Source of the DNA: Chara braunii
Lineage: Eukaryota; Plantae; Charophyceae
Direction: 5' to 3'
DNA: 52,142 bases
Assembly (NCBI GenBank): GCA_003427395.1
Contig: BFEA01000001.1
Location: 6,902,890-6,955,031 of the forward strand
Shown: piece by piece, positions 7,707-43,717 of the stretch
Layout: every line of letters begins with the position of its first letter
Position numbering within the stretch: position 1 is the stretch's first letter
The notes under the pieces: model-generated
The model's database searches: none
The model's input: the letters and a program-made list of their open reading frames with translations, nothing else
What the model was told of the DNA's origin: nothing
Translations under genes and position numbers: made by a program

Positions 7707-8040
7707 TGTGTGATTGATCGATACCGTTATACATATTGAGTGTCCTGATGAGTCGGTGAAAGTCTGACGAACAAGTCTGTCACAGCGCCTCTTTCTCCCT
7801 CTCGGCCTACAGTTTTCCGGGCAGTTCTGTTTGACCATATATAGTGTGTACCCCCTCGTTCGTTATCCTCTTTTTTAGGCGTGATTTATCGATACCGTTA
7901 TACATATTCAGCGCACTGTCGAGTCGGTGAAAGTCCGACGAACAAGTCGGTCACAGCCCCTCTTTCTCCCTCTCGGCCTACAGTTTTCCGGGCAGTTCTG
8001 TTTGACGATATATAGTGTGTACCGCCTCATTTGATCTCCT
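7707..8040 (+). mobile_element. Tandem (~171-bp unit) repeat carrying two degenerate hammerhead ribozyme motifs
   Basis: CTGATGA-GTCGG-tgaaagt-CTGAC-GAAC at 7745-7772. The second unit has GA-GTCGG-tgaaagt-CCGAC-GAAC at 7921-7943. The downstream sequence is shared with the 38145 copy. Confidence 0.65.
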
Positions 8041-9347: not shown

Positions 9348-9730
9348 NNNNNNNNNNNNNNNNNNNNNNNNNNNNNNNNNNNNNNNNNNNNNNNNNNNNN
9401 NNNNNNNNNNNNNNNNNNNNNNNNNNNNNNNNNNNNNNNNNNNNNNNNNNNNNNNNNNNNNNNNNNNNNNNNNNNNNNNNNNNNNNNNNNNNNNNNNNNN
9501 NNNNNNNNNNNNNNNNNNNNNNNNNNNNNNNNNNNNNNNNNNNNNNNNNNNNNNNNNNNNNNNNNNNNNNNNNNNNNNNNNNNNNNNNNNNNNNNNNNNN
9601 NNNNNNNNNNNNNNNNNNNNNNNNNNNNNNNNNNNNNNNNNNNNNNNNNNNNNNNNNNNNNNNNNNNNNNNNNNNNNNNNNNNNNNNNNNNNNNNNNNNN
9701 NNNNNNNNNNNNNNNNNNNNNNNNNNNNNN
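9348..9730. other. Assembly gap
   Basis: Run of N. Confidence 1.
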
Positions 9731-10544
9731 CGTCTCTAGTGAAAAAAAAAAAAAAAAAAAAAAAAAGTGCATTCCACGCACCTGCTAAGGGAGCTGCTGA
9801 CAGGGACGGATAGGGTAGCAGCCGCTTTATATGCACTACCTACCTCTGGGGACACGGGAAACGATGTGCATTTCTCATCTTTTTTTTTTGTTTTTGTTTT
9901 TGTGTTTTTTGTTTGAAGGGTTGTGACCTTGAGATATCATTGATAGGACTGGTCCCCCGGTCCCATGTAATTGAAGAAGCATTTGATGTCATTTATCTTA
10001 GTCCCATCTTCTGGATTCGACAGTTAATGGGTAGTACCAACTGCACCAGGCTAGTTGGTCTACTCCATTTCTGTTTTTTGAGCCGTCATTGATTTTATTT
10101 ATTTTATTTTATTTTATTTTTGTCAGCGATTTCCAATTTGTAAGGAGGCGCGCGGCGGTCACACTGCGTTGTGCGTCAGAGTAATACAATAAACTACAGC
10201 ATTGGCGATATGACCACTTGCTTGAATATTAGAAGACCATAGCAGGAGTGAAAAAAAAAAGAAAAGAAAAAAAAGCAGGCAAATCCAGCAGTGTGATAGG
10301 TTTTGCGGGGTCTTGTGAGAAAATCTTCAGTCTCGGGGCCGCGCTTGTGGAGGCTGGATGATAAGACCATCCTCCACCAGTGGACCCCCAGTGTGAACTC
10401 TCCGATCGTTTGGTTGGGAGCTTTGCCTGCCGGAAACCAGGTCCAGCGTCGCATCTATTTTTGGAAATTTTGGTTGTGTTATATACTGACTACCTATGTT
10501 ACCAGAGTGGTGGGGGACCACTTGCTCGGCCGGGCCAAAAATGG

Positions 10545-12790: not shown

Positions 12791-15160
12791 ATCCAGGCAT
12801 CGGAGCTACCGGACCCTACATCACGCAGGCAAACTTGTGGATTGAAATCGAGCCAACCCAAAACAGTTCGGAGGCTCGGAGCTACAGGACCAAAATGCCT
12901 GGTGGTACCAGCCAAAAGAAAATGAAAAAGTGTTGTGCTGGCGTTTCGGCAAAGCATGTAACCAAGAGCAGAACTGCAGCTTTCCTTCTAGAATCTAACT
13001 TAAAACTACACCCGAGTCCCGTCCCCGCGCCTCCAAGAACGTTTCTTCGCTTCTTCGCTTTGCTCCCCGTTCTCTGCGTAGACCTTCTTCGCCAATAGGA
13101 AATCCAAGGAGATGGCCATGTGTATTTTGCTCAAAGACTTAATTTGAAACAGACTGCTATGACGAACGCTTGGCGCTTGAAAAAAATATGAGTTCTGCTG
13201 GTGAATAATGCCCGTACTTGGGCTGTCGGATCGTGGTAGGTGAGAACCCGGCGCAGGTGTACTCCGTACTGTCAAGCGATGCGTGCGGATCGGGATTGTT
13301 TAATCAAAGGCGACGGGTTTGTTTTTTGAACTTTTTCAAAATTTGCAGGATTGCAATTCCTACTGCAGTAACATGAAGTCTGCAGTGATTTCCTCCTTTC
13401 TTCATCGGACGCATCCTATGGGCACTCTACCTGCGGCACAGGCTTCTTTTATATTCACCCTTAAGATTGAATCGAGGTTTCGGGGGGTTGCCGACCAGGT
13501 TTTTTTAATAAGGCCCTGAAGAATTTTAATAACAAGGTTGGTAGGTGCCTGGTCCAGTTCCGTCGACTATATCAGTGGGTGGAACCTTTTTGGGCCCGGT
13601 AATAATAGGTAGTTTCTTTTTCCGTTTGTTGGGTCTCGAACTCTCGGTACATTCTCGTAGGGTTTTAGGCTTTTTTTTTTGTCTCACTCATTTCTTTAGC
13701 CCGTTTTAGCAGAGCTACTTTCTGCTGTCGATTCTTTCAGTGAGACCATATGCTGGCGGACCGGTCGAAACATGTGTGGGCGAATTTGCCAGTTGAGGAG
13801 CTTCACGGTTATGGCGCTTCACAACCATCTTTCTGTTTCAGCTTTCGTTCAATATCTTATGAGCTGATTGCACTCGGGGTTTATGACTACTATTCTTTTG
13901 TGTATGTCTCTTCGTCTTCTCTCTTGCTTCCTCTTTCTCTCTTATCGTATGTATGACACTCGTGACCAGTTACGAGGAGTCGTCTCTCCATTTTTGTGCA
14001 GCATTATAGTTTAACCACGGTAGAGAGTAATCTTGATGCAACTGGCGAGCCAAGTGTATGACAGTCAAAGTCGGATGAGTAGAACCGTGAGGAGGCCAAT
14101 TACAAGGGTTGATAGCAGTAATCTCTTGCGTGACTGACGCCCTCATCTTCGAGTTCATCATTAGACTTTTGATTGGCGATGATGTTCCTTGCTCCCCTTC
14201 AGCACACATTCAAACTAGCTGCCTGGCCCCCAACGCAGGAGCCGCACACCAGCTACACTCGCTCCAATGGTTCACCAACAGGAGTTGGTCCCTCCCTCCC
14301 CCCCGACACTCAGAAGAGACTCCTCAACAGCCAACCAGGATAAAAGAGACCTACACACAGATCCCCTCTGAACATCCCTCCCCTAGATGTGGAGACAAGC
14401 AGGACCCTCACCAAAAAAAAACACCCCTGCGGTGGCACGAGATACTGAGACAGTCTCTCTTCGGCACATTGGCAATGCCGAAACATGTTTCATCTCCGCA
14501 CCCCGTCTCCATGGCTAACATGGGTAAAAAAGGGGATATACACCATTGGGGACTTGTGGGACGCCAGAACAGAGAATTGGAAGTTGCTCCAAGACTTGAA
14601 ATCCCGCCTCGAACATGTCAATGATCTGGACCAGAAAAGAAACCAACTTATCAAAATGATCCATTTGGTATGGCCGATTCAGCTGAAGAGAGGTCCCAAA
14701 CCCAGACCCACAGCGGTTTACCAGATACAAACACCTCACAGACCCGATAGCCTCACTTGCTGCGTACATCCTGGCTATGCGGGGAGCGAGGTATACCCCC
14801 CTTCACCGGCTAGAAGGGGGGGACAGAGTACTGCCAGCCAGCCGGCTGTTCAGAGTTAGGATGCTTGAATCCCCGACCCAGGACCGATGGGTTTTTGAAG
14901 CGGTCTCCCCCATTAGTGTGTTATCCTTTGACCCTATGGGAATGGAACAGGGAGGGGTTGGGAATGGGACAGGGAGGGGTTCCACTCGATGCAACTTTGG
15001 GGATACACAGTCAAACTTGAAATTATACCTTTCCCGACCGTCGAAGAACATCGTCGGAGCTACGACTGCGCTTTAAACCGGGTCAGTGTTAGTCCGGTAC
15101 CAAACTGGCGCGCTACCACTCACACACGAGTCTCCTTCTGCCTAACCCCAACAAGAGCAA

Positions 15161-15208
15161 TGAGTGTTTCNCCGGAATTTCACCGGCTCATCAGAGGCNT
15201 GACACTCG
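15161..15208 (-). ncRNA. Type III hammerhead ribozyme (copy 1)
   Basis: Minus strand: GAGUG-UC/ANGCCU-CUGAUGA-GCCGG-ugaaauu-CCGGN-GAAA-CACUC. Predicted cleavage between 15201 and 15200. Two bases are N. Confidence 0.85.
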
Positions 15209-15478
15209 CGGGTAATCTCCTTACACCGCAAATCCTCCGCAAGTCGTGTCAACACTCGCGACGCAAATGCGACGCGGCGCCATCCACTACCACACAACTT
15301 CGCGGCGCAAAGTCCAGCAGCAGTACGGAGGAACTTGAAATTATACCTTTCCCGACCGTCGAATAACATCGTCGGAGCTACGATTGCGCTTTAAACCGGG
15401 TCAGTGTTAGTCCGGTACCAAACTGGCGCGCCACCACTCACACGTAAGTCTCCTTCTGCCTAACCCCAACAAGAGCAA

Positions 15479-15526
15479 TGAGTGTTTCGTCGGAATTTCA
15501 CCGGCTCATCAGAGGCCTGACACTCA
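15479..15526 (-). ncRNA. Type III hammerhead ribozyme (copy 2)
   Basis: Minus strand: UGAGUG-UC/AGGCCU-CUGAUGA-GCCGG-ugaaauu-CCGAC-GAAA-CACUCA. Stem III is 7 bp with a GUC triplet. Predicted cleavage between 15519 and 15518. Confidence 0.88.
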
Positions 15527-18500
15527 CGGGTAATCTAGGAGGTTATAGAGAAGCCCGACCAACAGCACGGACCACTCAAACTATTGTTGCACGTCGGGCT
15601 AGGGATTCGATCTTGAAGGCGAAGGACCTACAGGGTCTTGATTGGGCTGCCTATGCGAAAATTATGCTCACAGCCCACTACGCCCTCCAGTGGCAGATCG
15701 TACAGCGCTGCTTGCCGACCCCGGACTTGCTCATCTCCAAATCAGACCTAGAATAGAAAAGTTATTTCTCCACTATCTGCACTTACTGTGGCTGAGCCTT
15801 ACAACCAGCACGAACAACGTTGGAACATTGTCTGCTATCTTGCCCGATAGTTGTTGAACTCTAGAAATGACGGAATGCGGTGTGACATCACCTCACAGGG
15901 CAGCACATTGTCGCACTTTTTCCAATCAAGCCACTTCTGGCGACCGGAAAGACAACAGGTTGTCAAATATTATTTTGCTTAATTTTGCAATAAATAAATA
16001 ATAAATCATGCAAATCCCTTTCTGTTGCGTGCGCCCGGCTTAAAGCAAGACCCTTCCGGCCTACGTTGGTCCCCGATCTTAGAAATCTTTGATTACGATT
16101 GGGAACAACAAATGCAGTTATGCAAACAATAAATTAAAATAAAATGTAAAACACATTATGATTGTTAAATTTAAGGAGTTCAGAAAAAAGAGCATAACAT
16201 CAAGCAATGTCAATAAAATAAGATTATAATGGCTTCTAGGTTACTTGCTCGACCGGACAAAAAAAATAAAATAATAATAATAATAATATATATATATATA
16301 TATATATATTAATTTGGTAAAGAGTTTCAATGTGACCTTGAGGCAATCGTTGTTCAGTCTATTTTTCTGCATAACATAGTTGTTTTTTGGATTTTTTGGA
16401 TTTTTTTTATTTTTTTCGGTTGGGATTTTTCCTAGTCCTTGCAACGCCGGGCTGTCCGGGAAATAGGGTAACGTGAGCGGACCAGCTGGTAGCCTAGACT
16501 GACTGATGATAAAGACGAGATAAATGAGGGAAGGTGATAACTTATAATAATCTCAGAAAGGACAGATGAAAAGACATGGCCAGCACTCGTCAAGAGACCT
16601 CACTCATCCCTTTCAGATCTCGTCCTCGATATCTCTTTTGATTGTGCGTCCTGAACGCCTCAAGCCACGTCTATGAACCTTTTCGAGATTGTAGTTTAGC
16701 GATATTAAAGTTACCTAAAGCCCATGAGTTTCGAGTAGGACCATCCAAGGCCAAAGATTCAGAAATCGAGCATAGCATAAAACTCATCTCATAAAGTAGG
16801 AAGATATGACCCAGAAAAAATCCCTCGTCGGAGATTGATGAACCCAGAGGGTTCGGTCACTACCTTATAATCAATCCCTGATGGAGAGACATACCTCTTG
16901 GCCAGGTCAACCAAATCCCCCGAATATGAGTCATCGGTGAGATAGAAAGGGACCAGAGGCCTATAATAATCATTGCACAGTTTGGAACCAAAGCAGTGAA
17001 TCATCTTCGTATCTCATGAAACTTTTTCCCCTTCCTCATATAGATTTTTTGGTCCTGAATAGTTCCCTCGGCAAACTATGTGAGAACCACATAAATCGAG
17101 AAATCTCCTTTATTGAATCTAATAACACAAACATATTAATAACGAAAAGCATCATTGCAAACTATCTTGTTCATATTGGTGAAGACTGATTGATCGACAA
17201 GAAATGAAGTAATAGTACTTATGAGTTGAGATGACTACCAGAACTAACTGAACTGATGGAGAACTGAAAAGTGATCAATGAGATGTCAATAATGATTTCC
17301 GAGGCGTGTATGTCTTGACGAAAATACAAATCAACTAATATTGATTTGAGAAGTGACATAAAACCACCGAATGATGATGGACCCTGACGATGGATCATTG
17401 ATGATACCTTAACTAACCACTGATTCATGATAACGGTCAACTGAATGGGAAGGAAATTTTTGATTTACTTGATGATATTTGCTGATTAATACACTAATAA
17501 GATCATTAAGAGAAATAATCAGAGTGCTTTCACATTCACTCGAGCTTCACATTAGCCTGCTCAATGGTCTCTAGAGATGAGTCAGTGTTGTGCAACTTAT
17601 CATTGCGATCATGAAAATAAAAAACATATTCAATATATTTTTCCCCTAAATTATGCGGACAGCGCGCTCTCTTAGGGTTAATTTATGAAACATCATGTCA
17701 TGATCGTCTTCCATCTCTCATCCATCATATTTGTGTTTGTTAATTTTATATCTTATCACTAGAATCTCTTCATCCCTCGTGATCTTTTCTTTATTCCAAG
17801 ATTTTCATTCCCACAAGAGTCGGAAAGAAAAAAGGATGACCAATAATCTGATAAATTTTGTAATTATCCTTGAGTTATTCGCCCAGTGAAGAAGGGTTGA
17901 TTTGAGTCGAAGCAAAGCTTGCTGAAAAAATCATTTTTTGTTAAAAAAATATGCGAACTTTTGCGATTCAATTTTCTCAGCAAAGTGTTTGAACACTTTT
18001 ACACTCTGTCTGGAGCCTTGTGGATTAAATGGGTATGTATTATCAATGTTCATACACACCAGTGTTGCTCCCTGCCAAGTTGCGAATAATCAAATATGAG
18101 TAAATCGTTGCGCGGAAATTATGAGAAACTCGTTATAAGACACTTGTTGCTAGCAGACTTTTGCAGGAGGTTCGTTATAACAACTCTTGACCGAAAATTC
18201 ACTCTCATGATAGTCCATTGCAGAATGTTGGCCTTAATTTATTGTATAATTGCTTCATTCCGCTCTGCCCAAAGATAAATAGCTTGCTTGTAGGATAGAA
18301 TCCGGGTGCTACCTATGGTAACCTCGTTTTCGCTTTTTGCACTGAGACCAATAGATAACAAGTTTCTCTCACGTCTAGCTTACCATTGAGTGCTCGTTTT
18401 AACGACAAGCAAAATATGATGTTATGGGTTACTGTTTTCAATCTTACACAGCATTAAGTACAATTGAACATTGAGCTTGCTAGTACAATGTACAGTGCAG

Positions 18501-29038: not shown

Positions 29039-29226
29039 NNNNNNNNNNNNNNNNNNNNNNNNNNNNNNNNNNNNNNNNNNNNNNNNNNNNNNNNNNNNNN
29101 NNNNNNNNNNNNNNNNNNNNNNNNNNNNNNNNNNNNNNNNNNNNNNNNNNNNNNNNNNNNNNNNNTGTCTATCTAGGTAGTCTATGTTTGCTTCTTTATT
29201 CATCTAGCTCCCTCTGTTCTGTGTGT

Positions 29227-35141: not shown

Positions 35142-35694
35142 GTGTCTATCTCGTCCTTCCTCTCGGTTTCTCTCGCCGCCTTGCTCCCTCTCGGCCGCCC
35201 TTCTTCCCTTCTCTCCCTCCCTCCTCCCGCCCTTTTTCTGTCTCTCCCTTCCTTTCAACCCTTCGCTCACATTTCTCACTTCTGGTCTGCCTCTCTTCCT
35301 CCGCCTCCTGTCATTCTCCGACCTCGTGGGTTCTCCATCGCCCCACCCCGCCCAATAGACAAATGACGATCTGATTCATGCTATCAAACGTCCTCTCGCG
35401 GTTTTAATCTGAACCTCCGGTAGTCTTCGGCCTGCCGCTACTCTTTCTCTCTCTCCTTCAAGTCCGTGCTGCTCCGCCATCTGCTTGCCAGCCTTTCCTC
35501 CGCTTCCACTTTTCCGTTCTGACGTTTCCACTTTTCTTTTCCGAATGCGCGCTCGTCTTCCGATCACCGGTTCCCACCTTTCCCCCCTCTCTCTCTCTCT
35601 GTGCGCCCCCCTCTCTCGTTGCCACGTGTCTCTTTTTATTGTTTTGATGATATGCCTTGTTCCCCCCCTCTCTCTCTCTATCTTTCACACACTT

Positions 35695-36025
35695 NNNNNN
35701 NNNNNNNNNNNNNNNNNNNNNNNNNNNNNNNNNNNNNNNNNNNNNNNNNNNNNNNNNNNNNNNNNNNNNNNNNNNNNNNNNNNNNNNNNNNNNNNNNNNN
35801 NNNNNNNNNNNNNNNNNNNNNNNNNNNNNNNNNNNNNNNNNNNNNNNNNNNNNNNNNNNNNNNNNNNNNNNNNNNNNNNNNNNNNNNNNNNNNNNNNNNN
35901 NNNNNNNNNNNNNNNNNNNNNNNNNNNNNNNNNNNNNNNNNNNNNNNNNNNNNNNNNNNNNNNNNNNNNNNNNNNNNNNNNNNNNNNNNNNNNNNNNNNN
36001 NNNNNNNNNNNNNNNNNNNNNNNNN
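35695..36025. other. Assembly gap
   Basis: Run of N. Confidence 1.
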
Positions 36026-36831: not shown

Positions 36832-36908
36832 GGGCTGTGATGAGAACTGTTTCTTTAGTCGGAGCTTCATCGACAACCCATCAGGAGGTTGAGCCCTCTT
36901 CAGTCTGT
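36832..36908 (-). ncRNA. Degenerate type III hammerhead ribozyme motif
   Basis: Minus strand: CAGACUG-AA-GAGG-gcucaa-CCUC-CUGAUGG-..GUCGA-ugaagcu-CCGAC-..GAAA-CAGU...acagccc. The core is mutated. Confidence 0.55.
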
Positions 36909-37737: not shown

Positions 37738-38140
37738 CGGGACTAGACTGCAATCGGATCGTGTTAATGTTTTTTTTCTTCTCCTTGTATCTTGTATTTC
37801 TTTCCTGTTGTCATATTCTTTTTTGTCGGCACTTGGCCAACGGCATGAGTGGAGTCGATCCTCTACTCCTCACGTCGGCAATTGGAAATCCGCCCATGCG
37901 TCCGCGGGACAGATCGGCTCTCCAATTCTCTCTGCTTCCACGTGGCGGAAATCCAGCCAGATGCGGCGATGTCTCTTATACTCGACACAGCTTTGCACGT
38001 GGCAGAAAGCCGGCCGTTCTTCTGCGCGACACATCGGCGTTTCCGTTTCTCTACTTGATGTCCACTCGGTGGAAATAAAGTCAACTGCGATCTCTTTTAT
38101 ATTTGACACAGTTTTTTATTTGAGTTGTGCGATAGTATAT

Positions 38141-38255
38141 CCTCCTGATGAGTCGGTGAAACTCCGTCGAAACAATTTGTCACAGCCTCTCGTTTGTTGT
38201 CCTCTTTTCCCTCTCTCTCTGCCTACCGGGCAGCTCTGTTTGACGATATATATGC
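38141..38255 (+). ncRNA. Degenerate hammerhead motif plus conserved downstream repeat sequence
   Basis: CTGATGA-GTCGG-tgaaact-CCGTC-GAAA-caatttgtc-acagcc at 38145-38187. The tail gggcagctctgtttgacgatatata is shared with the 7745-family copies. Confidence 0.65.
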
Positions 38256-38645: not shown

Positions 38646-39633
38646 TAGTGATGGATGCGAGGATGGATGGCTAGGCGGACTGTTGTCGGTGAGTGCATGT
38701 GATTCTGCTGAGAGGTTGGTGGATGTAGATGTGGAAAGAAAGGAATCGTGGCCGTCGGATCGTCGGTCGAACGGTGGCCGTCGGATCATCAATCGAACGG
38801 ACCAACTGAAGAAAGGGCGGGTCTCCTTAGTAATCAGGCTGCTGTAATAAAAGCAAGTGTTTTTTTTTTTTATAGCATGCACACTCACAGTAAGAGCCTC
38901 GTTCTTCGACGCCACTTGAAAATACTCGAGTTTCAAGTGCACACTAGAAGAGAAATGTGATTAATTTACACTAAGTTCCATGTACACTTGAGAAAACCCT
39001 TGAACAGCCCCTGCACTTGAAACCGAACTCCACGGCTTGCTGACCAATCAATCCTGGACCAGAATCGCCTGCTGATTGAACTCAAGGTAGGTACCTCGGG
39101 GAGGTACCTTGAGTTCAAGTGCGATTTAGGCCCAGCGGCACTTCCGCTGGCACTTGAACTCAAGGTAGGTACCTCGGGGAGGTACCTTGCGATTTGGGCC
39201 CAGCGGCACTTGAGAGTTTCAAGTATGCACACTAGAGAGCAGGAATTCAAAGTGAAAACATTACGGCGGGGGGGTCATCATGCCCTTGAAGGTGCGGTGA
39301 TGGTAGAGACTGTAACCTATGGAGGAGGTGCGGTGGAACACATGCAATCGGATCTTTTTTGGCATTCGGTTAATAATAGAGATGAGCAATGGATCGTTGT
39401 GTTGTTGGAGTGATTGACATGGAGTGAGCGTTTCGGGATAAATGAAAAGAAGGTCGCACCTCGCACATTTTGATCTTTCTTGCATGCAAGTATGATTCGA
39501 TTTTTGTTCGACTTGCATAAGACTCGTGTGGAGGGGCTATTCCTCCCACCACGCAGGAATTGCCATCCCCCCCCCCCCACCTTTCTGAACCTGCGGTGCT
39601 ATTTTTTTTTCACTCGCGTTTCCTTCCTTGCAG

Positions 39634-40178
39634 CAGAGTTCTTTGATCGGAGTTCCTGCGTCTGATAAGACCTCCATCGAGGCAGAAGACGGAGTGGTGG
39701 TGAATGACGTTGTGGAAGATCCGAGGTGCTTGGACGGGCTGATACCACGTAATACTGGCAAAGGAATTTTGGAGGCGGAGGCAGATGAAGAGGAAGGGTG
39801 TACGGCCCTCCCGTTCGATGCACCTGCTAATAATAACGGCACTGCTTTCGCAGTGACTCTGCAGCCAGATTTGACAAGTGGCCAGGCGCCGGAGATTAAA
39901 GAACAGCTCTCTTACTCGAAACAGGGAGGGGATATGGATGGATCAGCGGGTGCTGCTGTGTGGGATGGGCCGTCTGCGGCGGGAACAACAGGAACTGTTG
40001 TCTCTGGTGGTACAGCCCACTCGCCTCTCAGTAGAAAGGAGGAGCAGAGAAATGAGGAGAGCGGCGTTATGCCGTGGGGATTTGCGAATGGGGATGATCC
40101 GTCTGTCTGCAGCATTTGCCTCGAAGAGATTCGTTTGGAGGAAGTCGCACAGATCAAGGGCTGTGAGCATGTCTACTG
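39634..40178 (+). CDS. C3HC4 RING-finger protein (putative E3 ubiquitin ligase), exon with N-terminal half of RING
   Basis: Polypyrimidine tract + ttgcag/cag acceptor. Open frame to CSICLEEIRLEEVAQIKGCEHVY(C). Donor TG|gtgagt. The start codon or upstream exon was not identified; the first in-frame ATG is at 39934. Confidence 0.85.
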
Positions 40179-40421
40179 GTGAGTGAGCTCATCTTCCATC
40201 TTTCCCCGCTCCTTTGTTAATTAATTATCGTTGTTATATTTCTTTTCTTTTTTTTTTCTATTCAAGGTGCGGGGCGAGGAGGGGGGAGAGGGAGGGGGTC
40301 CGGGGGGTATTTATATAAAGATCTGTCCTCAGCGTCTGAATGCGAGCACGCGGTTTTTACGAGTACTTGGAGAAGGAAAGGCATGTGCAGGGAGATCCGG
40401 GGAGTGCATGTGAACTAACTA

Positions 40422-42030: not shown

Positions 42031-43224
42031 GTAGGCCATCCACATGTTGTTGACCATGCAGTGAGTGATGTGGTGGAATGACTACGGTAGGTGGTGTGAA
42101 ATCTGTGTACGCTCATCGGTTTTGCCGAACTTCACGTCCTGTTGGAACAGAAAATCACTGACTGTTCTAGATAGTGTCTCCTGCTTTGGGGACCATCTGG
42201 CCATTGTTGGCGAGTCATTGCTGGCTTCCACCATTGTTGGCGATTCATTGCTGGCTTGATTATTGTATTGCTTACGGTCAGGTTGTTGGTGCTGTGTACT
42301 TTGTTTGTATTTGCTGGCTGGACTATTGTATTGCGTCCTGTCAGGTTGTAAGTGCTGTGTGTACTTGGTTCTCTTCTTTGAAATCAAAGTCTGGGTTATA
42401 TGTGCCTGTATCCTGCTGGAAATTCGACCAAATCCTCCCCCCCCCCCCCCACTACAGAAATTGGTTATGGTCAGGATCTGGGCTGCATACTGTGGCTGAA
42501 GGCCTCAGATAAGATCAGCCCAACATACTGTTACGACCCCAAGCTCCTCCCTGACTCCCTCTTCCCCTCCTTCTGTGGCAAGGCTCGACGTCCACATTCC
42601 TTGGCCCCACCTTCTGCATCTCCGTCTCCCCAATGTCATCTCCCCTCATCCCCGTTTAGGATGCACTACTGCTCACTGTGCAAGCAAAGCACCATTTAGT
42701 TGTGATCTGTTCATGTTTGATTGTTGCGAATCTGATGGATGACATGCATCACGGAGAAGAGGCCCTGCTCCGAGGCTGAGCGCAATGGAGTTCAAGTGTC
42801 AGCCTCTGCAAGGGAAGGCAGGTGTCATGTTCTGGTCTGCACTTCTCTTATCGGTTAACACTTTCAGAAGTTTTGCGGTGTTATTTCAGCACAGCAAATA
42901 CCATATCTTGGAAGGCAATCAATGCCTGTGTGATACACCATCCGATCGTGTTTGCATCGGTGCATGCGATCTACTGTTATTTTTTGCTGCAGCTCACTAT
43001 ACATATTGCAATGTAGAGCAATCCGTGTGTGTGACGATTCTGTGACTGATCCTTCTCTTGCATGTGCGTGCTGTCTTTGTGTCCGGCCTTTCTGAAATGT
43101 CCTCTTTCTGTGCTGTGCTACTAACCATAGCCCTTGCACATCCCTTGTGGGAGGTGTCTCTGATAAGGACGAGACTTGACTCCGTGACGTGATTGCTTGT
43201 GTGTGTGTGGCAATGTGGCTACAG

Positions 43225-43717
43225 TCTTCGTGATTCTATGGTGGAGGAGAGTGTCTGCCTTTTGTTGAGGGCGAAGTGGTTCAAGCATGAGGTGGTTCGG
43301 CAGGAAGCAGAGGAGACAGATTTGAGAGAGTTTCAGTACTCGTATCAGGATGAGGTACTGGAAGATGATGGATATGGATACGATGACTACTATGTCCCGG
43401 CGGTGCGGCTTGGGAATCGGCGGTGGGGAGGGACCGGGTATGTCCGGAGCGGACGAAAAGAGGCCCGTGTCGTCAACAGCACATCCTCACCAGGTGCAGA
43501 TGGGGCTGCCTCCTCCTCAGGAGGTACAGGTAAGGGGAAAGGTAAGGGAGGTGAACCTCTTGGCAGACGTGCGAAACGACAGCAGAAACGAGAAGCCATG
43601 GACAAAGCTGCTGCGGAGAAACTCCTGCAGCAGCCACAGCAGCGGCAAGCTCAGAAAAGGTCGGCAATCCACCGTAGCAGCTGCTTAACAGATACAGCAA
43701 GTGGGGCTCTTAAGTAA
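43225..43717 (+). CDS. RING-finger protein, terminal exon
   Basis: Acceptor tacag|, then LRDSMVEESVCLLLRAKWF...RLGNRRWGGTGYVRSGRKEAR...GRRAKR...stop. I recall these motifs as conserved in a green-plant RING family. Confidence 0.9.

Follow-up and report, generated by a model that had tools for sequence, protein, structure and literature searches.

One important question raised by a stretch of 52,142 nucleotides from the charophyte alga Chara braunii (contig BFEA01000001.1, positions 6,902,890 to 6,955,031; hereafter the window, with all positions counted from its first nucleotide) is what kind of element is represented by a short insert at positions 15014-15536, in which a 318-nt unit is repeated in part and a hammerhead ribozyme motif occurs twice on the minus strand. 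A first-pass annotation, made from the sequence alone, had taken it for a retrozyme-like element whose transcripts would cut themselves at both hammerheads. The analysis presented here indicates that the family is transcribed and that its RNA is at least unit-length-periodic (circles or multimers) and free of flanking sequence. The locus is quite probably copied from a mobile hammerhead RNA element that is expressed. More cautiously, we favour on balance the reading that it is a retro-copied, non-coding 1.64-unit fragment of a 318-nt hammerhead-bearing RNA element of C. braunii, retrozyme-like and devoid of long terminal repeats (LTRs).

The geometry of the insert was established by a repeat search and by pairwise alignment. 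Two direct repeats of 205 nt (15014-15218 and 15332-15536) with a spacing of 318 nt and an identity of 95% were obtained, as the first-pass annotation had described them, and the copies differ at eight real sites plus two N (15171 and 15199). The parts of the insert referred to below are the following.

15014..15536, minus strand: the insert in full, 523 nt (1.64 times the 318-nt unit), sharply delimited from unique flanks.
15201..15518, minus strand: predicted unit-length RNA, 318 nt, A15518 ... C15201, between the two predicted cleavage sites.
15318..15536, minus strand: diverged 5' part of the insert, which departs from the expressed consensus at 10 sites, against 0 sites in 15014-15317.

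The unit is G/U-rich, as previously stated (G+U 58%, with a GC content of 54%). Inspection of the borders revealed no poly(A), target site duplication (TSD) or TG..CA termini at the insert ends. A tRNA-iMet primer binding site (PBS) was not found, the best match being only 8/12 (TGGTACCGGACT), and the sole purine tract of the insert sits on the wrong side of this match. An architecture with PBS, polypurine tract (PPT) and LTRs was ruled out by the weak PBS match, the misplaced purine tract and the lack of TSD and TG..CA ends. No reverse transcriptase (RT) or endonuclease domain was detected in the 10 open reading frames (ORFs) scanned with Pfam (eight window ORFs of at least 150 aa and two flanking the insert), and searches of the flanks with the ESM Atlas and at the protein level were likewise without match. 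The absence of obvious LTR ends noticed in the first-pass annotation is therefore borne out, and it extends to the tRNA-iMet primer site and to an RT gene.

The anatomy of the two hammerheads is given below, copy A being resolved into its segments.

15479..15526, minus strand: hammerhead copy A, type III topology, core intact, helix III of 6-8 bp, 37.8 bits, local E 1.8e-6.
15525-15520, minus strand: helix III 5' strand of copy A, GAGUGU.
15519, minus strand: C17 of copy A, with cleavage predicted at C15519/A15518.
15518-15513, minus strand: AGGCCU of copy A, the helix I remnant, a self-complementary hexamer between C17 and CUGAUGA.
15512-15506, minus strand: CUGAUGA of copy A, core.
15505-15489, minus strand: helix II and 7-nt loop of copy A, GCCGG-UGAAAUU-CCGAC, with a C.A mismatch at 15504/15490.
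15488-15486, minus strand: GAA of copy A, core.
15485-15480, minus strand: helix III 3' strand of copy A, ACACUC.
15161..15208, minus strand: hammerhead copy B, same core, with N at 15199 (helix I, position 1.2) and at 15171 (position 11.1), and G at position 11.2.

Copy A has all the invariant positions, G10.1-C11.1 among them, and CUGAUGA, GAA, A15.1-U16.1 and GUC are present in both copies. The helix II 3' strand of copy B reads CCGGN, and its predicted cleavage site (C15201/A15200) bounds, together with that of copy A, exactly 318 nt. The Hammerhead_3 model of Rfam (RF00008), whose use the first-pass annotation had suggested, spans both copies end to end (15526-15479 with 37.8 bits and 15208-15161 with 30.5 bits). 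Over the whole window, on both strands and with 4227 families, the E values are 1.2e-4 for copy A and 0.013 for copy B, so that these matches exceed chance. Both lie under the gathering score of the model (48.5 bits) and surface only under E-value reporting, because helix I is a 6-nt AGG/CCU palindrome with a loop of zero length. The AGGCCU hexamer is the sole sequence between the cleavage site and CUGAUGA, with no helix I hairpin and no folding in cis, and GGCC recurs nowhere else in the unit apart from the equivalent site one period away (15195-15200). Hence, of the three helices of a type III hammerhead, helix II (5 bp with a 7-nt loop) and the open helix III are present and the closed helix I is missing. 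The open helix is helix III, since GAA is not followed by a helix III hairpin plus UH. A type I reading was ruled out: a downstream UGAGUGG could pair with ACACUCA, yet G, and not U-H, comes next. On the plus strand no ribozyme was found with Rfam under E-value reporting. The "full hammerhead core" of the first-pass annotation thus stands for the core itself, intact in both copies, but not for the fold around it, which lacks the helix I hairpin and scores below the Rfam threshold. This missing hairpin is the most unusual feature of the element and had gone unmentioned.

Evidence for transcription was obtained from public RNA data. Parts of the stretch occur in 18 runs of nine studies, including small libraries of the source organism and two soil metatranscriptome studies, and their presence in very small libraries indicates that the family is abundant. 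Reads from four runs were mapped to positions 15200-15900, the copy B hammerhead never being covered directly. In run X1, a random-primed soil metatranscriptome, a single 348-nt contig with a word depth of 72 was found. This contig maps to 15288-15517 and then back to 15200-15317, which amounts to 318 nt plus a 30-nt overlap (k-1, k being the word length of the assembler), the output of a k=31 assembler for a closed cycle; no contig sequence of this run maps past 15536 into the flank within the mapped interval. In run X22, which contains raw poly(A) RNA-seq data of the source organism, the depth was 12-25 within the element and 0 in the flank, and the 318-nt back-joint was crossed by six reads with four start points. 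A 196-nt piece was recovered from the second soil study (run X8) and was about 6% diverged, with nine substitutions and three 1-nt indels. At least two independent data sets contain flank-free RNA with an exact 318-nt periodicity. When X22 was compared with X21, a run of the same study, over positions 15200-15535, the 318-nt family was about 20-fold commoner in X22, whereas other hammerhead families rose in proportion to sequencing depth; this difference may stem from expression specific to a tissue or state, or from presence and absence of the RNA. A self-closing, unit-length RNA of the size proposed in the first-pass annotation is present in public data, and it fits circles and multimers equally well; no pile-up of read ends at the GUC was seen in the poly(A) library.

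The expressed RNA has the copy B base at every site where the two copies differ. At position 15490 a T-to-C change (plus strand) was present in 72/72 in X1 and in 19/45 in X22, and with G at this position in the RNA the C.A mismatch of copy A becomes a C-G pair, giving a helix II with five Watson-Crick pairs. Ten differences from the expressed consensus fall in 15318-15536 and none in 15014-15317 (Fisher p 1.6e-4). Judged by these differences, this locus is not the source of the RNA, or at the least the half that contains copy A is not, and other copies must exist. A mosaic switch was noticed near unit position ~196-200, close to the insert end (187) and in a region that is hypervariable among the reads. 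The first-pass annotation had described the locus as 1.6 turns of a reverse-transcribed circle. The length agrees with this (1.64 units), but repeats made by going twice round a single circle would be identical, and so the copying of a single circle is disfavoured by the unequal divergence. The template may instead have been a heterogeneous multimer, the RT may have switched templates or two events may be superimposed. Since the insert crosses the cleavage/ligation junction twice, the template was either uncut or religated.

Further hammerheads were located in the window, and these have decayed.

7707..8040, plus strand: decayed tandem of a related hammerhead family, two units of ~172 nt, helix II GUCGG-UGAAAGU-CYGAC; not part of the element.
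38122..38178, plus strand: single decayed copy from a related hammerhead family, position 17 being G and helix I shortened; not part of the element.
36832..36908, minus strand: solo decayed hammerhead of a dispersed family, with CUGAUGG and the GUC lost.

In the tandem at 7707-8040, a 15-nt loop closes helix I (GAUAC/GUGUC), the second unit has the core CUGUCGA and both units carry GAAC rather than GAAAC. Reads indicated that relatives of the 38122-38178 and 36832-36908 copies are expressed, with opposite mate directions. The window relatives share helix II and loop 2 with the element (GUCGG-UGAAA[G/C]U-CCGAC). One helix II pair is U-A in these relatives and C-G in the expressed 318-nt RNA, a compensatory change, and helix III covaries when compared with the 38145 copy (G-C and G-C in the element, U-A and A-U in the 38145 copy). 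Such covariation lends modest support to both helices, II and III. Lack of covariation in these two stems was one of the findings that the first-pass annotation had named as fatal to its proposal; covariation with the window relatives was found to this modest extent, and no further copy of the unit lies within the window.

Scans outside the window gave little. A metagenome scan for GTC-N6-CTGATGAGCCGGTGAAA returned one chance match in a bacterial coding sequence, viral scans for GTCAGGCCTCTGATGAG returned two chance matches, neither with GAAA or helix III, and IMG/VR yielded nothing for a 23-nt segment taken from the unit body. Two IMG/VR contigs (L004, 6305-6333, minus strand; L005, 558-586, minus strand) contain hammerhead-like motifs in which the 29-nt stretch that runs from CUGAUGA to GAAAC, with its hairpin GCCGG-UGAAAUU-CCGGC, has the same sequence as in the expressed element. 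This hairpin is matched by the FMN riboswitch model (CCGGUGAAAUUCCGG) as well, and the resemblance would thus point to modular reuse of a hairpin, possibly of T-loop type, rather than to common descent.

Folding of the unit was assessed for both strands. The minimum free energy (MFE) of the circular form was -104.4 kcal/mol for the minus strand and -79.3 kcal/mol for the plus strand, with z-scores against shuffles of +0.4 and -0.3, and the linear unit had z = -0.17 against shuffles. The circular fold proposed as a check in the first-pass annotation therefore showed no viroid-like excess of structure, and a compact viroid-like fold was ruled out by these z-scores of about 0. The hairpin arms listed in that annotation do exist, but they do not make the unit fold better than shuffled sequence, and the CCUCCG/CGGAGG arm is broken in the expressed RNA, where a U is replaced by C.

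The spacing of only six nucleotides from C17 to C3 allows helices II and III in a monomer but precludes helix I. When two expressed 61-nt domains were folded together with RNAcofold, the MFE structure had a shared AGGCCU helix I and a swapped helix III, both helix II hairpins being kept, with a predicted energy of -41.5 kcal/mol against 2 x -17.2 for the monomers. For a 384-nt transcript with two hammerheads, the nested double-hammerhead conformer was predicted at -135.6 kcal/mol, the MFE at -136.6 and two cis folds without helix I at -132.4. Having no first stem-loop, the ribozyme probably needs two paired copies if it cuts at all, and we put forward only tentatively that the dimer with swapped helix I is the active form. 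In such a scheme, a multimeric transcript would bring two hammerhead copies together, their AGGCCU hexamers would anneal to form a common helix I of 6 bp, and partners would be exchanged between the open strands of helix III to give two complete three-way junctions, cutting both GUC/A sites. A host RNA ligase would join the 318-nt product. The monomeric circle, being unable to form helix I, would be protected from re-cleavage, and the RT of a resident retroelement (Penelope-like or long interspersed nuclear element, LINE) would copy the circular or multimeric RNA into DNA.

Several findings weigh against the reading of the locus as a retro-copied hammerhead RNA element. The closed contig with its k-1 overlap and the reads across the back-joint fit long tandem transcripts as well as circles. 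The contact between loops 1 and 2, which is needed for activity at cellular Mg2+, is lost here. Further copies of the unit or of either flank were absent from the 52-kb window when searched with blastn, and no other copy of the element was found in the metagenome or viral collections scanned. In addition, the unequal divergence of the two repeats from the expressed consensus would be a poor fit to rolling-circle copying of a single circle. The same holds for the points that favour a different explanation, namely a ribozyme killed by a loop-1 deletion within a transcribed tandem repeat, the periodic RNA being read-through or long non-coding RNA from longer arrays elsewhere and the locus a 5'-truncated retrocopy or a DNA-level fragment. 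It would account for the missing helix I and for the failure of the Rfam search at gathering thresholds to return either hammerhead. The palindrome may indeed be a trivial deletion scar: related copies (the decayed one at 36832-36908 and the loose-end consensus of the reads) have GGGYUCAACCUC between GUC and CUGAUGA, a 3-bp stem with a 6-nt loop, and removal of the loop leaves AGG/CCU, while helix I deletions occur in clearly decayed, dead copies of the window too. It would also agree with the read ends of X22, which show no pile-up at 15518/15519 (the only flagged pile-up is at 15365) and cover the junction at about normal depth; an oligo-dT library would lose cleaved or circular ribozyme-sense RNA, and X22 therefore neither supports nor refutes cleavage. 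First mates of X22 were 5-10:1 on the minus strand, and the library is taken as stranded because two other hammerhead families split 11/12 and 15/16 to opposite mate directions; under the usual dUTP (deoxyuridine triphosphate) chemistry, the poly(A)-selected RNA would probably be mainly plus strand, antisense to the ribozyme. Finally, the unequal repeats suit a heterogeneous multimer template, and neither the circular nor the linear unit has more secondary structure than shuffled sequence. What speaks against a dead ribozyme is that the abundant expressed variant is intact except for loop 1, the restored helix II pair included, whereas the decayed copies of the window carry core mutations, that an isolated cycle of depth 72 was obtained from a random-primed soil metatranscriptome and that the dimer fold is the predicted MFE. 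We regard this explanation as a minority view, though one of real weight.

The isolated, high-depth 318-nt cycle in soil, together with the diverged variant in the second soil study, could also be read as an exogenous or autonomous viroid-like or satellite RNA of the host or of an associated organism, of which the locus would be an endogenised cDNA copy. Both polarities are present, the reads are heterogeneous in sequence and the roughly 20-fold difference in level between X21 and X22 is unlike the behaviour of the other hammerhead families, all of which would suit such an RNA. The assembly, however, contains a DNA copy, a ribozyme was found in one polarity only, the fold is neither rod-like nor unusually stable, helix II and loop 2 are common to the resident genomic hammerhead families of the window and the unit body has no match in IMG/VR, so that we consider this origin improbable. 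Less probable by far is a coding circular RNA, in which a plus-strand circle of the expressed variant, with one ATG and a stop-free frame of 106 codons (318 = 3 x 106), would be translated endlessly. The expressed consensus does have 0 stops in plus-strand frame 1, against 2 in genomic copy A, and plus is the probable dominant polarity of the poly(A) RNA-seq data. At this composition an open frame is nevertheless expected by chance in about 2.5% of cases per frame and, all frames taken together, in roughly 7-10%; three 1-nt indels occur in the X8 variant, and no Pfam match was obtained on the ORFs of the unit. Coding capacity is unlikely. A retro-copied fragment of an expressed hammerhead RNA element remains the reading that we favour.

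Among known systems, dimeric double hammerheads have reportedly been found in newt satellite 2, in avocado sunblotch viroid (ASBVd) and in Penelope-like elements, in work said to be that of Forster in 1988 and of Lunse et al. in 2017. The element resembles them in that one helix is too weak in cis, a palindrome pairs between copies and, according to the prediction, only multimers would cleave. All those described share or extend helix III, whereas the present element would share helix I and swap helix III, a predicted circularly permuted analogue. Natural hammerheads with a weak palindromic helix III are active only as dimers in tandem repeats (PMC4209133, PMC7229834), and no description of dimerisation through helix I was found in the literature searched. 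The element might accordingly be the first natural obligate helix-I dimer hammerhead, in which loss of loop 1 left a palindrome, helix I is shared and helix III swapped, multimers are cut and the 318-nt circle is immune, and it might define a third retrozyme architecture, LTR-less and type III, in a streptophyte alga; this larger proposal we hold to be doubtful.

Metazoan non-LTR retrozymes consist of non-coding tandem units of 150-450 bp with one hammerhead each and without LTR, PBS or PPT (Cervera & de la Pena 2020, PMC7229834). The element (318 nt, 1.64 copies) agrees with them in unit size and in the lack of LTR, PBS, PPT and coding sequence, and shares the short LTR-less tandem unit, the expression as heterogeneous RNAs of unit-length periodicity and a ribozyme that would need two copies. 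It lacks the type I hammerhead: in the metazoan elements, found in animals, the hammerheads are of type I, helix III is weak and palindromic, the contacts between helix I and loop 2 are intact and the GC content is <50%, in contrast with the type III hammerhead, palindromic helix I and GC content of 54% in this streptophyte alga. With the LTR retrozymes of plants (Cervera et al. 2016, PMC4918200) it has in common a type III hammerhead in direct repeats, a non-coding sequence, a proposed circular RNA intermediate and the green lineage. The plant elements have LTRs of 300-400 bp, a tRNA-iMet PBS, a PPT, 4-bp TSDs and circles of 600-1000 nt, whereas the repeats described here are the overlap of a 1.64-mer. 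Avsunviroidae and viroid-like satellite RNAs are similar in size (~300 nt), in the type III hammerhead and in the putatively cyclic, unit-length RNA; they differ in having no DNA stage, usually ribozymes in both polarities and a highly structured fold, as opposed to the DNA copy, the one-strand ribozyme and the z-score of ~0 observed for this element.

Hammerhead retroelements are already known in the C. braunii genome, where the high-copy Chlamys Penelope-like elements carry canonical hammerheads (Craig et al. 2021, PMC8557442). The element thus occurs in the same genome as hammerheads located in the non-coding tails or pseudo-LTRs of very abundant retroelements. Chlamys elements are autonomous, several kb long and RT-encoding, with pseudo-LTRs, unlike the 318-nt unit, near which no RT ORF was detected; they are a likely source of RT for its mobilisation. 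Type III hammerheads have been assigned to plant LTR retrozymes and type I to the LTR-less retrozymes of animals (PMC4918200, PMC7229834, PMC7761336, preprint 10.64898/2026.07.22.740005), and type III is the type to be expected in the lineage of C. braunii. For Selaginella and Chlamydomonas, the occurrence of hammerheads in tandem repeats has been noted (PMC5680766). No paper linking retrozymes to Chara was found in the literature searched, nor one describing an element of this kind in the lineage, in agreement with the suggestion of the first-pass annotation that the family may be undescribed. The features specific to this LTR-less type III element are a helix I without a loop and an RNA of unit length. 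An expressed unit of this type in a charophyte alga would lie between the plant LTR (type III) and the animal LTR-less (type I) retrozymes, and it is relevant to the possible descent of plant retrozymes and viroid-like RNAs from hammerhead repeats associated with Penelope elements. Should the dimer with swapped helix I be real, a strategy of cleaving as a multimer and surviving as a circle would be reachable by weakening either closed helix, and the element would offer a simple natural system for testing the control between multimer and circle, with one hexamer predicted to decide activity.

Some minor features of the window were also recorded. A 22-nt unit (TGGGAATGGRACAGGGAGGGGT) is present twice at 14937-14980, 34 nt from the 3' border of the insert, and the 5-nt sequence CCTCC is common to the upstream flank and to the unit sequence just beyond the 3' end of the insert, possibly by chance. 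Runs of N (844 in all) are located at 9348-9750, ~29040-29160 and ~35530-36000, next to poly(A)/poly(T) or to (CT)n microsatellites, and represent assembly gaps or masked stretches. Two probable exons of a host gene were identified on the plus strand, one at 39628-40182 with a RING-like zinc finger at its end (Pfam zf-RING_11, E 2e-4, below the cut-off) and one at 43193-43717, which is acidic, then basic, and of low complexity.

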